Origin: Octopus sinensis
Taxonomy: Eukaryota
Assembly: GCF_006345805.1 (NCBI RefSeq)
Contig: NC_043001.1
Span: 20,212,001 to 20,276,000 of the forward strand
DNA: 64,000 nt
Reading direction: 5' to 3'
In this document: positions 23,711 through 61,480 of the stretch, one piece after another
How positions within the stretch are numbered: the stretch's first letter is position 1
How the letters are laid out: each line of letters begins with the position of its first letter
Made by a program: the position numbers and the translations under genes
Notes under the pieces: generated by a model
What the model saw: the letters and a program-made list of their open reading frames with translations, nothing else
What the model was told of the DNA's origin: nothing
The model's database searches: none

Positions 23711-24639
23711 CTAACACTCAATTGTACTTTGTACATTTCTGTCATTTCTTTCATTAATCCTCTCCAAGAAAGCAGATAACTGATCATTCCCCACTTCTGA
23801 AACAGTATGGCTTACGCTGTCACTTCCGTTCAGTCTAGAGTTTGTAAATGTATTGTTTTTATATACTTCAAATGACATACAGTCAGAAACTTTTGAATTC
23901 TTGTCAAAATTGAAATTAGACAAAGTATCATTAATTTCAAATTTGGGGAACATGTCAGTGTACCAATTGGGAAACATCCTTTGTTTATAGTCTCGAGAAA
24001 CTAAAGCATCATTTAAATTTTGTATTTCTCGACTTTCTTTCCAGTTCATTTGGAATTTTACATGGGATCTACTTGGCTGTATTTCAGACTGTTGGTCATT
24101 TATGTCACACAAGAGATTTTCAATTTGATTCAAGTCCAGACTATTATTATTTGCCAATACATTTGGCCTGTATAAGTAATACATATTTTCTTGGGAATCT
24201 GAGCATAACTGAGAATTTTCAAAATTACTCAGATCTTCAAATGTTACATGAAAAATGTTCTTTGATTGATTTATATTATCTGTGCAGAATTTAACAAGCT
24301 CAATTGTAAAATCAGCCATTTCTTGACCAATTCCATTTTTCCCCTCATTCTGGCAGTGATAATACAGACCATCTGAATGAACAATAATGAAGGTGTTGAA
24401 ATAGTCATAAACATGTTGAATTTGTTTCTTAAGCAATTTGTTTCTTTTTAATTTCATTTTGTGGGAACTTCTTACATGTAAACTTGTATAACTGTTTAGC
24501 ATTATAGTTAGTTCTTTGACGGCAGCACAGTGCTCCATGGGGTGAGGGAAACATATAACCAAGCCTTGTTGCTGAGCTGTGTCCTGGTTTACGTTGGTGC
24601 ACTGTAAATATTTCAAACATTTTCTTCTTTGAAGTATCA
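23711..24639 (-). CDS. IL-17-receptor-like gene, terminal exon: SEFIR-like domain plus IL17RA/RD-type extension
   Basis: Acceptor tctgatttacag; 929-nt open frame starting ILQRRK (stop-transfer); LVICFPHPMEHCAAVKELTIMLNSYTSLHV...FIIVHSDGLY...IFHVTF...YYL...LNQIENLLCDI follows the SEFIR pattern; WKESREIQNLNDAL...FPNWY resembles the IL17RA GRQL..A....PDWF extension. Confidence 0.8.
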
Positions 24640-24979
24640 CTGTAAATCAGACAGATTAGAAAATTTACGTTTCAATATGAGAAGAAAAGAAAAGAAAAAA
24701 AGCATAAAACAAGAAACAGAAATGTAATACATTGACAATAAGTGATAACAAATTTTTTTACCACATGTCATCATCATCATCATCATCATCATTTAATGTC
24801 CGCTTTCCATGCTAGCATGGGTGTTTATGTTTAGTTGTGTTCTGAAGACAAGTATGATTACAAACTAAACATTAAGTGCTTAATCTTAGCATACAACAGT
24901 TGAAACAAAACAATGAAAATTCTAAGCATATTTGAATCTTGTGAATATTATAATAATAATAATAATAATAATAATAATG

Positions 24980-25320
24980 AAATTATTGTATACAGTGTCA
25001 AAAGTGCGTATAGAGCATATGCAGTAATGTACAAATGTCTGGAAAGCGAACAGTGTATGGGTCAGATACATGCTTGCATGTGTATGGAGGGGAGAAAATC
25101 AGGTGTAGTGTTGGCGAATCTCAGGAAGCATGGTAGTTTTGAAGGATGCAGTGCTCCGACAACTAACAACAGAAGCCGGCAGTTTGTTCCATGCTTCAAC
25201 AACTCATAGTGTGAAAAAATGTTTCCGAAAGTCATGGGAGCTGTGCTGTTTTCTGACTTTGTAAACATGTCCTCGGGTGTTAGACAGGTGGAGTTTGAAA
25301 AGGTGCTCAGAGTTATGTGG
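24980..25320 (-). mobile_element. CR1-type LINE 3' fragment
   Basis: NTRGH.YKVRKQHSSHDFRKHFFTL plus (TTA)n tail. Similar 3' fragments at ~26240-26500, 29640-29910, 45790-46290 and 46800-47225. Confidence 0.85.
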
Positions 25321-25786
25321 GAAATAGTTTTTAATGATGGAACTCAAAGTAGATAAAGCTATAAATAATAGCATGTAAATACTGGGTTTAAAAAATTCCT
25401 TGGATAACCGTGTGACAGTCTTTGACTTTTCCAAAGGGTTTTACTTAACCTAACATTTCCATGTTATACTTTCTAGCTTTATCATGGTTTATATAAAAAT
25501 GTGTAAATGTTGGGTTAAAACAAAAAAGAACAACATTTACACATTATTATTCATAGGGCCTTTATCAAAGCAGTGGACTGACCAAATTGTTAGTTTGCTG
25601 AACAAAAAGTGCTCAGCAGCAATTCTTTGAATTGAATAATAAACGGAAAATTCACATTCAGACTTATTAATCCTCTATCAATTCTGTGTTTGTTCTACTT
25701 TAAACACATTCACACAGAAACTGAAACAGCTTCTAAATTTATAAAAATTATAAATTATAATCATCACATTTCAAAGATATACTTAC

Positions 25787-25868
25787 TAAATAAGCAGATA
25801 ATTAAAGATAAAATCAAAACAAGGATCAAAATCCAAATAGCTGAGCCCTGACTACTGCCTTTCAGGGG
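25787..25868 (-). CDS. IL-17R-like gene, transmembrane exon (phase 0-1)
   Basis: Acceptor tttttccacaacacgcatccag, donor TTA|gtaagt; PLKGSSQGSAIWILILVLILSLIICLF; final A + TG of the next exon gives M-ILQRRK in frame. Confidence 0.85.
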
Positions 25869-59931: not shown

Positions 59932-60567
59932 TCATTTGCTTGAAACGACTGTTTAATGCTAAGTCATTATCATCATCATCGTTGTCATTGTCATTCTTGT
60001 CATCACCATCATAACAGCTTTTTTGCCATGCATAGGAGTGGCTGTGTGGTAAGTAGCTTGCTTACCAACCACATGGTTCCGGGTTCAGTTCCACTGCATG
60101 GCACCTTGGGCAAGTGTCTTCTACTATAGCCTCGGGCCAACCAAAGCCTCGTGAGCGGATTTGGCAGATGGAAACTGAAAGAAGCCTGTCGTATATATTT
60201 ATATATATGTATATATATATGTGTATGTGTGTGTGTATATGTTTGTGTGTCTGTGTTTGTCCCTCCAACATCGCTTGACAACCGATACTGGTGTGTTTAC
60301 ATCCCCGTCACTTAGTGGTTCGGCAAAAGCGACCGATAGAATAAGTACTAGGCTTACAAAGAATGAGTCCCGGGGTCGATTTGCTTGACTAAAGGTGGTG
60401 CTCCAGCATGGCCGCAGTCAAAATGACTGAAACAAGTAAAAGAGTAAGAAAGATCGATACAACATCTGACATGTGGTACACGGTGCATCTGTACAGGTAA
60501 TGTCGATTTGATGGAGGGAGTGAGCTTATGAGTAAACAGATTTTTCTTTTCATTATTTTTTTTTTAC

Positions 60568-60644
60568 CTTGTTAAATTTGGCCACTCAGAGGCAGAATAA
60601 TCTCTGGCTTCCTTTAACAGTTCAGAATGGCAGTTTACCCAGAT
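60568..60644 (-). CDS. IL-17R-like gene, candidate exon (phase 0-2)
   Basis: Donor AAG|gtaaaa; IWVNCHSELLKEARDYSASEWPNLT(R) is in phase with exon 57289; the acceptor (aaaatagatag) is poor and abuts an RTE tail. Confidence 0.45.
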
Positions 60645-61096
60645 CTATCTATTTTTACCATCTGTACGTTGCCGATGCCAGCGCTGCCTTGACTGGCTTC
60701 TGTGTTGGTGGCACATAAAAACCACCAACCGATCGTGGCCGTTGCCAGCCTCCCCTGGCACCTGTGCCAGTGACACGTAAAAAGCACCCACTACACTCAC
60801 GGTGTGGTTGGCGTTAGGAAGGGCATCCAGCTGTAGAAACACCGCCAGATCAGACTGGAGCCTGGTACAGCCTCCTGGCTTCCCAGACCCCGGTCGAACC
60901 GTCCTACCCATGCTAGCATGGAAAACGGACGTTAAACGATGATGATGATCTCAGATTGTAGTTTCATTCTATGAACTTATTTTAAGAATGGGAGATGTCA
61001 TGTACGACACTAGCATCGCTAGATGGGGTGGCAATGGTAGGCAACACTTTAATGGTGGGGCAGCACTTTAGGGCCTGCAGTATATGCCTGTGTAAG

Positions 61097-61480
61097 GGTC
61101 TGATGCGGGAGTAGGGATGGCAAGCTCAAGGGCAGCCCCGAGTGGCACATTAGGTATGTCATCAATGTACAACAGTAAGCTGGTGATGAAAACTATCTCC
61201 ACTCACAAATACTATATATTCTTTAAGTGACACACAGTCCCTGATCTTGTATCGAGAAAAACGTGTTTTAAATCATGAGTGGGAGAAATACAGTAACAGT
61301 ACCGGATAGTAATGTTTATATGGCAACATAATGTGGCAGTCCTGTAAAGTCTTAAGTTTTTGAGTATCACGTAAGGCTAGACATGGGAGCGATGGGGTCT
61401 GATGTGGGAGTAGGGATGACAAGCTCAAGGGCAGCCCCGAGTGGCACATCAGCTATGGCACCAGTGTACAACAGTAAGCT
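61097..61480. repeat. Two ~85-bp direct repeats ~299 bp apart
   Basis: ggtctgatgygggagtagggatgrcaagctcaagggcagccccgagtggcacat...tgtacaacagtaagct at ~61097-61180 and ~61396-61480. Confidence 0.85.
61207..61245 (-). CDS. Possible further upstream exon (phase 0-0)
   Basis: Acceptor gtttttctcgatacaag, donor TTT|gtgagt; only open frame is IRDCVSLKEYIVF. Confidence 0.35.

Follow-up and report, generated by a model that had tools for sequence, protein, structure and literature searches.

Signalling by the established interleukin-17 receptors (IL-17Rs) runs through a SEFIR adaptor and TRAF6. We describe here an uncharacterized gene of Octopus sinensis, LOC115212086, that may encode a much diverged receptor of this kind, and we establish which gene it is, how its exons and membrane topology are arranged, how large its family is and how its paralogues are related. 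The gene was analysed in a stretch of 64,000 nucleotides (nt) of the O. sinensis genome (GCA_006345805.1, CM016863.1:20,212,001-20,276,000; the 51,214-nt overlap is identical), hereafter called the window, in which all positions are given. The Nautilus genome paper reports an IL17R for Nautilus but for no further cephalopod, and an IL-17 expansion that is specific to octopods (PMC8257504); for O. bimaculoides 31 IL-17 genes are reported (PMC8353272). The ligand expansion had also been named in a first-pass annotation of the window, which was made from the sequence alone and called the gene IL-17-receptor-like; on this point the literature bears it out (PMC8353272, PMC8257504).

The mussel Mytilus galloprovincialis IL17R-A and IL17R-D (PMC8353272) resemble the octopus product in being type I proteins with a multi-exon ectodomain and an alpha/beta domain soon after the transmembrane helix. 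They also have in common with it, in the same order, the motifs V-I-x-C...H-x-x-A-V-x-x-L-x-x-x-L-N-S, F-[IV]-[IV]-I-V-x-S-x-x-x-Y-H, I-x-x-L-x-C-x-I and P-N-W-[FY]. However, identity is about 16%, and the mussel receptors match Pfam SEFIR whereas the octopus family has no match at E<=10. Vertebrate IL-17RA and IL-17RB (4NUX, 3VBC; 3JVF, 4HSA) share the architecture, and the IL-17RA extension ends in P-D-W-F where the octopus domain has P-N-W-Y, but no sequence relationship is detectable. The TIR receptors (TLR and IL-1R) are likewise single-pass proteins with a cytoplasmic alpha/beta domain for homotypic interaction. They show no similarity to LOC115212086, whose ectodomain is neither of the leucine-rich repeat type nor a clear immunoglobulin (Ig) set. 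The neighbouring LOC115212051 has the same architecture and a nearly identical tail but differs in the ectodomain and transmembrane region and carries C-x2-C-G in place of C-x3-C.

Gene identity and exon structure

The feature is exons 2-11 of LOC115212086, a minus-strand gene of about 50 kb. A search of 5.8 billion proteins with the first-pass product returned two from Octopus, each carrying the name 'uncharacterized protein'. We defined the exons by tblastn of the O. bimaculoides and O. sinensis RefSeq proteins together with a splice-site check (Table 1). The resulting model of ten exons (1752 nt), all with canonical splice sites, is 100% identical to residues 38-620 of XP_029636773.1, which is isoform X1 and has 620 amino acids (aa). 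RefSeq lists the gene as 'uncharacterized protein' with three isoforms, X1-X3, and its entries give no function, domain or family name. The orthologue, O. bimaculoides LOC106868483 (XP_014769260.1), carries the same designation and is 93-94% identical. No paper was found in the literature under the LOC or XP identifiers. The gene had been announced as hidden; since NCBI models both loci in full, it is already known to annotation.

The first-pass annotation had chained twelve intervals between 23711 and 61245 into one reading frame. All twelve are bounded by AG and GT, and they join to 1755 nt (584 codons) with the terminal stop alone. Such an open chain is not evidence by itself, because on the minus strand of the same span 8,343 AG..GT segments with lengths of 28-150 nt are open in at least one frame, and in 32 of these the splice sites look strong. 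Seven of the twelve intervals are exact (exons 2, 4, 5, 6, 7, 8 and 11 of Table 1). An eighth, 25868-25787, shares the donor of exon 10 but begins 53 nt too late. The other four are spurious: 60644-60568 and 57289-57239 lie in intron 1 near a reverse-transcriptase open reading frame (ORF) and show no protein similarity in either species, and 28076-28034 and 27550-27433 are unsupported, their place being taken by exon 9. Exons 3 and 9 were absent from the chain. With five of twelve exons wrong or truncated, about 90 residues of the first-pass protein are fictitious. Its remark that the last exon alone is visible as a long ORF was accurate (23711..24640, minus strand, 309 aa). The lesson for annotation is an ordinary one: the gene had already been modelled, and a GT-AG chain assembled by eye contained about one-third wrong exons.

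There is no start codon in the window because exon 1 lies about 8.7 kb beyond it, in agreement with the first-pass annotation, which had found none and had called its own candidates at 61245-61207 and 62658-62615 weak. These two candidates were rejected, as they have no similarity to the protein of either species. A scan of the window for exons of the form ATG-hydrophobic-GT gave microsatellite ORFs only. A (TG/TA)-rich microsatellite at ~63100-63720, with long low-complexity ORFs on both strands, swamped the naive signal-peptide exon search.

The isoforms X2 and X3 differ from X1 at opposite ends. Isoform X3 starts at the ATG at 53317 in exon 2, in another frame, and skips exon 3; it was reproduced exactly. 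The first-pass join of 53306 to 44900 (..MYHT continuing across the junction into NNHAAIAKF) is exactly this isoform. Isoform X2 (XP_036359088.1) takes its 3' end from a frameshifted partial copy of exon 11 (Table 1) that sits just past the tract shared with the paralogue. Its junction could be placed at 54 positions (23994-23941 to 22901-22848), all between direct repeats, and 0/54 have GT-AG. Because none of these junctions is canonical, X2 is probably a repeat-mediated artefact.

A unit of ~1.18 kb occurs in tandem at 52442-54814 with 95-100% identity, and within it the 28-nt exon 2 is present in two identical copies. The duplication could be real or an artefact of assembly, and the protein cannot tell which copy is spliced.

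Predicted product

XP_029636773.1 has hydrophobic segments at residues 2-24 and ~294-316, the second being the transmembrane helix, which is followed by RRK. The ectodomain of ~270 aa contains six N-x-S/T sequons and eleven cysteines, including those of CFQEC. A Ser/Thr-rich stalk separates it from the membrane, and 304 residues are cytoplasmic. The order of signal peptide, ectodomain, one transmembrane helix and cytoplasmic domain gives a type I single-pass topology. In this respect the first-pass annotation described the product well: the N-glycosylation sequons, the C-x3-C motif, the transmembrane helix and RRK are all present, and the gene is indeed one of small exons for a type I, single-pass, glycosylated protein with a beta-rich ectodomain and a conserved cytoplasmic domain in a large last exon.

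The part of the tail that is conserved in the family alignment (23960..24565) is a candidate divergent SEFIR domain with an extension; about 85 aa follow it. An AlphaFold model of the full-length protein (3 sequences) had a predicted local distance difference test (pLDDT) of 36 and an all-beta ectodomain. For the cytoplasmic part (10 sequences) the pLDDT was 39.7 and the predicted template modelling score 0.37, and the strands and helices came in the order b-a-a-b-a-a-b-a, which is compatible with SEFIR/TIR. Confidence is low because the alignments are very shallow. The ectodomain is predicted to consist of tandem beta-sandwich modules resembling fibronectin type III (FnIII), and the paralogue has a weak generic fn3 match (Pfam, E=0.023).

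Family and tandem paralogues

A HMMER profile search of 1.84 billion representative proteins recovered two further relatives only, P0003 (E=1e-16) and P0004 (E=1e-13). A second, word-indexed search with the cytoplasmic alignment returned P0004 alone. Both show about 25% identity and have the same architecture. The family thus comprises four clusters, none with a Pfam domain. The core GLVxCxP...H..A.KE...IIxS...YYH...NWK.S.E..NL..AL is kept throughout, and the window gene belongs to the family. Six sequencing runs contain P0003 as intronless contigs of ~2.1 kb, which shows that it is transcribed; the contig with P0004 (ENA, 233 kb) shares no repeats with Octopus. The family is very small and apparently restricted to cephalopods, a cephalopod origin of P0003 and P0004 being assumed.

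In the P0003 transcript (SRR29271474 contig, positions 1-432 upstream of the ORF) stops precede the ATG and there is no signal peptide; one frame upstream of the ATG closes with the hydrophobic residues LISLYMFCLVLVASL and then a stop. These features point to intron retention or to an isoform with an incomplete 5' end. The membrane-proximal exon 7 motif of LOC115212086 is S-C-F-Q-E-C (C-x3-C), while the corresponding motifs of the paralogue and of P0003 are Q-C-F-Q-C-G and S-C-L-T-C-G (both C-x2-C). The CxxCG of the latter two resembles N-C-Y-S-C-G and N-C-N-S-C-G in the mussel IL17R-A ectodomain.

By cluster membership each Octopus species has two tandem loci. The paralogue LOC115212051 (O. 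bimaculoides LOC106868403), here called B, ends ~7.3 kb upstream of the ATG of LOC115212086 (A) on the same strand. The ectodomain and transmembrane region of A and B are ~26% identical, whereas the cytoplasmic tails agree at 92% of protein and 95-98% of DNA positions, the 3' untranslated region (3' UTR) included. Within the ectodomain, similarity to B is detectable in exon 6 alone (P0002 match, 26.5% identity, E=0.014). Between Octopus species the ectodomain is 82-94% identical, and the cytoplasmic domain is the conserved part family-wide. In O. bimaculoides a newer model of LOC106868403, XP_014769126.2 (1149 aa), joins the B tail (...NGGDS) to exon 2 of A (ITPAANVSYY). This read-through model is probably an annotation artefact, yet it confirms the tandem, same-strand order.

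The tract shared with the paralogue (Table 1) has abrupt edges, with flanks of ~40% identity. It opens precisely at GLVICF, 62 nt into the last exon, and extends 590 nt beyond the stop codon. Within it the 3' UTR is 98.3% identical and the coding sequence 95.0%, with a synonymous divergence (dS) of 0.112, a non-synonymous divergence (dN) of 0.035 and omega of 0.31. Pure purifying selection was considered as the source of the similarity and rejected in view of the higher identity of the 3' UTR and the abrupt ends on both sides. In a four-way comparison of the A and B tails from the two species, 6 informative sites favour orthology and 6 favour grouping by species. The pattern of identity points to tails kept alike by gene conversion or by repeated segmental copying. 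The omega value indicates that purifying selection still acts on the tail protein.

Comparison with SEFIR domains

The mussel IL-17R sequences were taken from Supplementary Data 3 of PMC8353272, and their SEFIR regions (classes A-F) were stitched to serve as closer outgroups. The family cytoplasmic alignment was compared by hhalign with six versions of a SEFIR profile. The best result was obtained with mussel A, C, D, E and F plus human RA and RB (P=0.0012, score 29.8), where 187 columns aligned collinearly, with strand bA at one end and the distal PNW[FY] at the other. The score was reached by 0/120 column shuffles, 0/120 permutations in 12-column blocks and 1/120 in 25-column blocks, and the reversed alignment scored 14.5. 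After allowing for the six profile versions the best P is ~0.007. Without mussel A, the profile of mussel C, D, E, F and human RA, RB gave P=0.036 (score 20.7, 180 collinear columns). An octopus-only profile scored 22.4, rising to 29.8 once P0003 and P0004 were added; true SEFIR pairs from different phyla score 34.7-41.9 when their profiles are as thin. In the independent AlphaFold prediction, whose low pLDDT is given above, a strand or a helix stands at every SEFIR core element that was aligned.

A SEFIR hidden Markov model (HMM) scored octopus A and B weakly above shuffled sequence, at 4.9-6.7 bits (6-19/1000 shuffles as good). The family HMM scored mussel IL17R-D at 7.5 bits (1/1000 shuffles as good), and pairwise Smith-Waterman alignment with shuffles gave a marginal result, with z values of up to 3.4, for no sequence but mussel IL17R-D. 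A TIR profile, built from MyD88 (checked against the PDB), TLR2 and IL-1R1, gave P=0.48 over 12 aligned columns with the family and P=0.12 with SEFIR.

Other results speak against SEFIR ancestry and an IL-17R identity or are uninformative. Six queries (the first-pass chain, its last exon, P0001, P0002, P0003 and P0004) gave no match at E<=10 to Pfam SEFIR (PF08357), IL17_R_N, IL17R_fnIII_D1/D2 or TIR/TIR_2. The mussel IL-17Rs match Pfam SEFIR at 1e-12 to 1e-30 (PMC8353272, Table 3). Sequence and profile searches of the PDB found nothing, nor did searches of NCBIfam and PADLOC. A SEFIR HMM from 23 vertebrate IL-17RA/RB sequences scored the family no differently from shuffled sequence, and hhalign with vertebrate-only SEFIR profiles gave P=0.37 and 0.72. 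Adding mussel B to the best profile lowered the score to 19.1 (P=0.063), equal to its 25-column block null, and adding 21 vertebrate sequences as well lowered it to 16.1 (P=0.18). With mussel C-F plus human, too, the 25-column block null mean equalled the observed score, the signal there being mostly the first strand-helix motif; most of the SEFIR signal sits in this bA-aA motif. P0003 and P0004 alone had no SEFIR signal. The ectodomain comparison with mussel IL17R-A was not significant (hhalign P=0.17). Foldseek of the low-confidence full-length model did find IL-17RA ectodomains (3jvf_C, 1.7e-4; 4hsa_C, 3.7e-4), with very low TM-scores, but GH2 Ig-like, fibronectin, Tie2, IFNGR and IL-2Rb structures scored similarly; these model-based matches support 'FnIII-like' and not 'IL-17R-specific'. 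Foldseek of the cytoplasmic model against the PDB returned no SEFIR or TIR (best E=0.78), but the model is too unreliable for this to be read as a negative.

In our view the resemblance to the IL17R-A/D type of SEFIR is reproducible and collinear, and very remote homology would be compatible with it, but it is also weak, profile-dependent and below any accepted threshold, and therefore suggestive only. Because P was unstable across the profiles, we regard SEFIR ancestry of the cytoplasmic domain as possible rather than probable.

Favoured reading and its alternatives

Receptor function, SEFIR ancestry, ligand and pathway are what we infer from these comparisons. In the reading we favour, the gene would encode a ligand-binding signalling receptor whose ectodomain is free to diverge and whose cytoplasmic domain, near-identical between the paralogues, may serve as a docking or oligomerisation module. 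This module would be of SEFIR type and descend from the molluscan IL-17R-A/D lineage with extreme divergence, and signalling might proceed via a SEFIR adaptor (Act1/CIKS) and TRAF6 to NF-kB. We put forward this whole reading, a diverged SEFIR receptor and candidate 'missing' coleoid IL-17 receptor, tentatively. The fuller claim that the two-gene family together with its coleoid relatives is the 'missing' receptor, its SEFIR domain having diverged beyond the curated models, we consider rather unlikely as it stands.

The same observations could be produced by an orphan cephalopod receptor with a lineage-specific cytoplasmic domain unrelated to SEFIR, which would signal or scaffold through partners other than Act1/TRAF6 and have no connection with IL-17; this main rival we take to be almost as likely. 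In its favour, the family has only four clusters among 1.84 billion representatives, none with a Pfam domain, every SEFIR/TIR test at a curated threshold fails, and the six P values listed above are unstable. The signal lies largely in a strand-helix motif of ~25 residues that many alpha/beta domains could mimic, and the most divergent members have none on their own. On the other hand, the best SEFIR comparison beats 359/360 permutations and extends collinearly through the entire domain, and the match becomes stronger when those divergent members are added. TIR, another alpha/beta signalling domain, has no comparable score. The architecture is also that of an IL-17R, with beta-sandwich modules, a transmembrane helix, an alpha/beta domain ~25 residues past the membrane and an extension, in one terminal exon. 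The domain might instead belong to another alpha/beta superfamily, either TIR proper or a flavodoxin-like module: the predicted alternation of strands and helices is compatible with several doubly wound folds, and SEFIR and TIR are themselves distant by profile comparison. The short, non-significant alignment with the TIR profile and the lack of TIR matches in Pfam and PADLOC make this quite improbable.

Two further explanations dispense with signalling or with the gene itself. The product might be a surface protein for adhesion, matrix or mucosal functions, with a tail for trafficking or cytoskeletal anchoring. In favour of this are the glycosylated ectodomain with its Ser/Thr-rich stalk and the Foldseek matches to generic FnIII/Ig-like modules, as in adhesion molecules; moreover, Pfam recognised nothing of a signalling type, whether kinase, death, TIR or another domain. 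Adhesion molecules, however, usually have many repeats and short tails. A short, fast-evolving ectodomain (~270 aa, about two modules) against a folded 200-aa tail domain conserved across relatives of 25% identity is typical of receptors, and we think a non-signalling protein improbable. Isoform X2, which is impossible with canonical splice sites, and the newer O. bimaculoides annotation that fuses the two neighbours could be taken as signs of an artefact of annotation or of a pseudogene in decay. This we judge very improbable, since the reading frame runs uninterrupted through 11 exons whose sites are canonical, the identity to O. bimaculoides extends across ectodomain and tail, the tail is under the constraint noted above and the homologue P0003 is transcribed.

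Other sequence features

The window also contains mobile elements. Beside the ORF in intron 1 listed in Table 1, reverse-transcriptase ORFs lie at 59474-59935 (-) and 8406-9068 (+), the Pfam RVT_1 matches of the set having E=8e-36 and 2e-29. Downstream of the gene a retrotransposon is represented by fragmented ORFs at 7272-10255. Interspersed repeats of ~180-420 nt, resembling short interspersed elements and 80-92% identical, occur on both strands and are common to the introns of both paralogues (for example 28647-29064, 31138-31620, 35465-35756 and 21485-21910). ARAGORN found no intact tRNA gene in the window.

Table 1. Positions in the window of the exons of LOC115212086 and of associated features
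Feature	Position	Strand	Length	Remarks
Exon 1	72797-72687 (window-equivalent; outside window)	-		Signal peptide; MTYILLLMVTIYFISSKPLIVCTLYTNQKSVKNLNCP then GT
Exon 2	53306..53333	-	28 nt	IIPGANVSY+1 in X1, residues 38-46 of XP_029636773.1; AG/GT
Exon 2, second identical copy	54489..54516	-		Inside the 1.18-kb tandem duplication 52442-54814
Exon 3	47832..47983	-	152 nt	Encodes YIINMTHKVKVISCNQNFEIHVLELNEQVVCVKIQLMKGEQTIVKPLLVSA; tblastn to O. bimaculoides protein E=5e-20; exact to XP_029636773.1
Exon 4	44832..44900	-	69 nt	
Exon 5	41925..42000	-	76 nt	
Exon 6	38297..38445	-	149 nt	Start of the predicted membrane-proximal beta-sandwich
Exon 7	35220..35297	-	78 nt	Carries CFQEC
Exon 8	29302..29356	-	55 nt	
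Exon 9	27953..28033	-	81 nt	CNWNTSLELQAKQNLCGDFEQITTLAP; tblastn E=1e-9; exact to XP_029636773.1
Exon 10	25787..25921	-	135 nt	Ser/Thr-rich stalk and transmembrane helix (~25841-25787, into exon 11)
Exon 11	23711..24639	-	929 nt incl. stop	End of transmembrane helix, RRK, entire cytoplasmic part (308 aa); identity to O. bimaculoides 92%; exact to XP_029636773.1
Conserved cytoplasmic alpha/beta domain (candidate divergent SEFIR and extension)	23960..24565	-	~202 aa	GLVICFPHPMEH ... FPNWY; family-invariant positions
Tract shared with paralogue	23122..24577	-	1,463 nt	96% identical to LOC115212051 (L003 77457-78919)
Frameshifted partial copy, middle of exon 11	22799..23099	-		88.6% to own exon 11, 90.8% to paralogue B
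Reverse-transcriptase ORF, retrotransposon	57699..59537	-	612 aa	Pfam RVT_1 E=8e-36; intron 1, adjoins spurious 57289-57239

Implications

The octopod IL-17 repertoire is among the largest known, yet an IL17R has been reported in Nautilus alone, which leaves either an unrecognised receptor or a missed annotation. A divergent coleoid receptor would reconcile the ligand expansion with that report. The gene pair described here is a concrete, testable candidate, combining the right architecture with a weak, collinear resemblance to SEFIR. Should the favoured reading be refuted, the genes would still define a cephalopod-restricted, receptor-like family with an unclassified and strongly conserved cytoplasmic domain.

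If it is true, a cephalopod IL-17 receptor would be in hand, and the family would show the extent to which a SEFIR domain can diverge with its function kept. The pair would also be an example of concerted evolution, with a uniform signalling tail under divergent ectodomains: the ectodomains of the two paralogues would provide two ligand specificities, with one signalling output through a tail homogenised by gene conversion.

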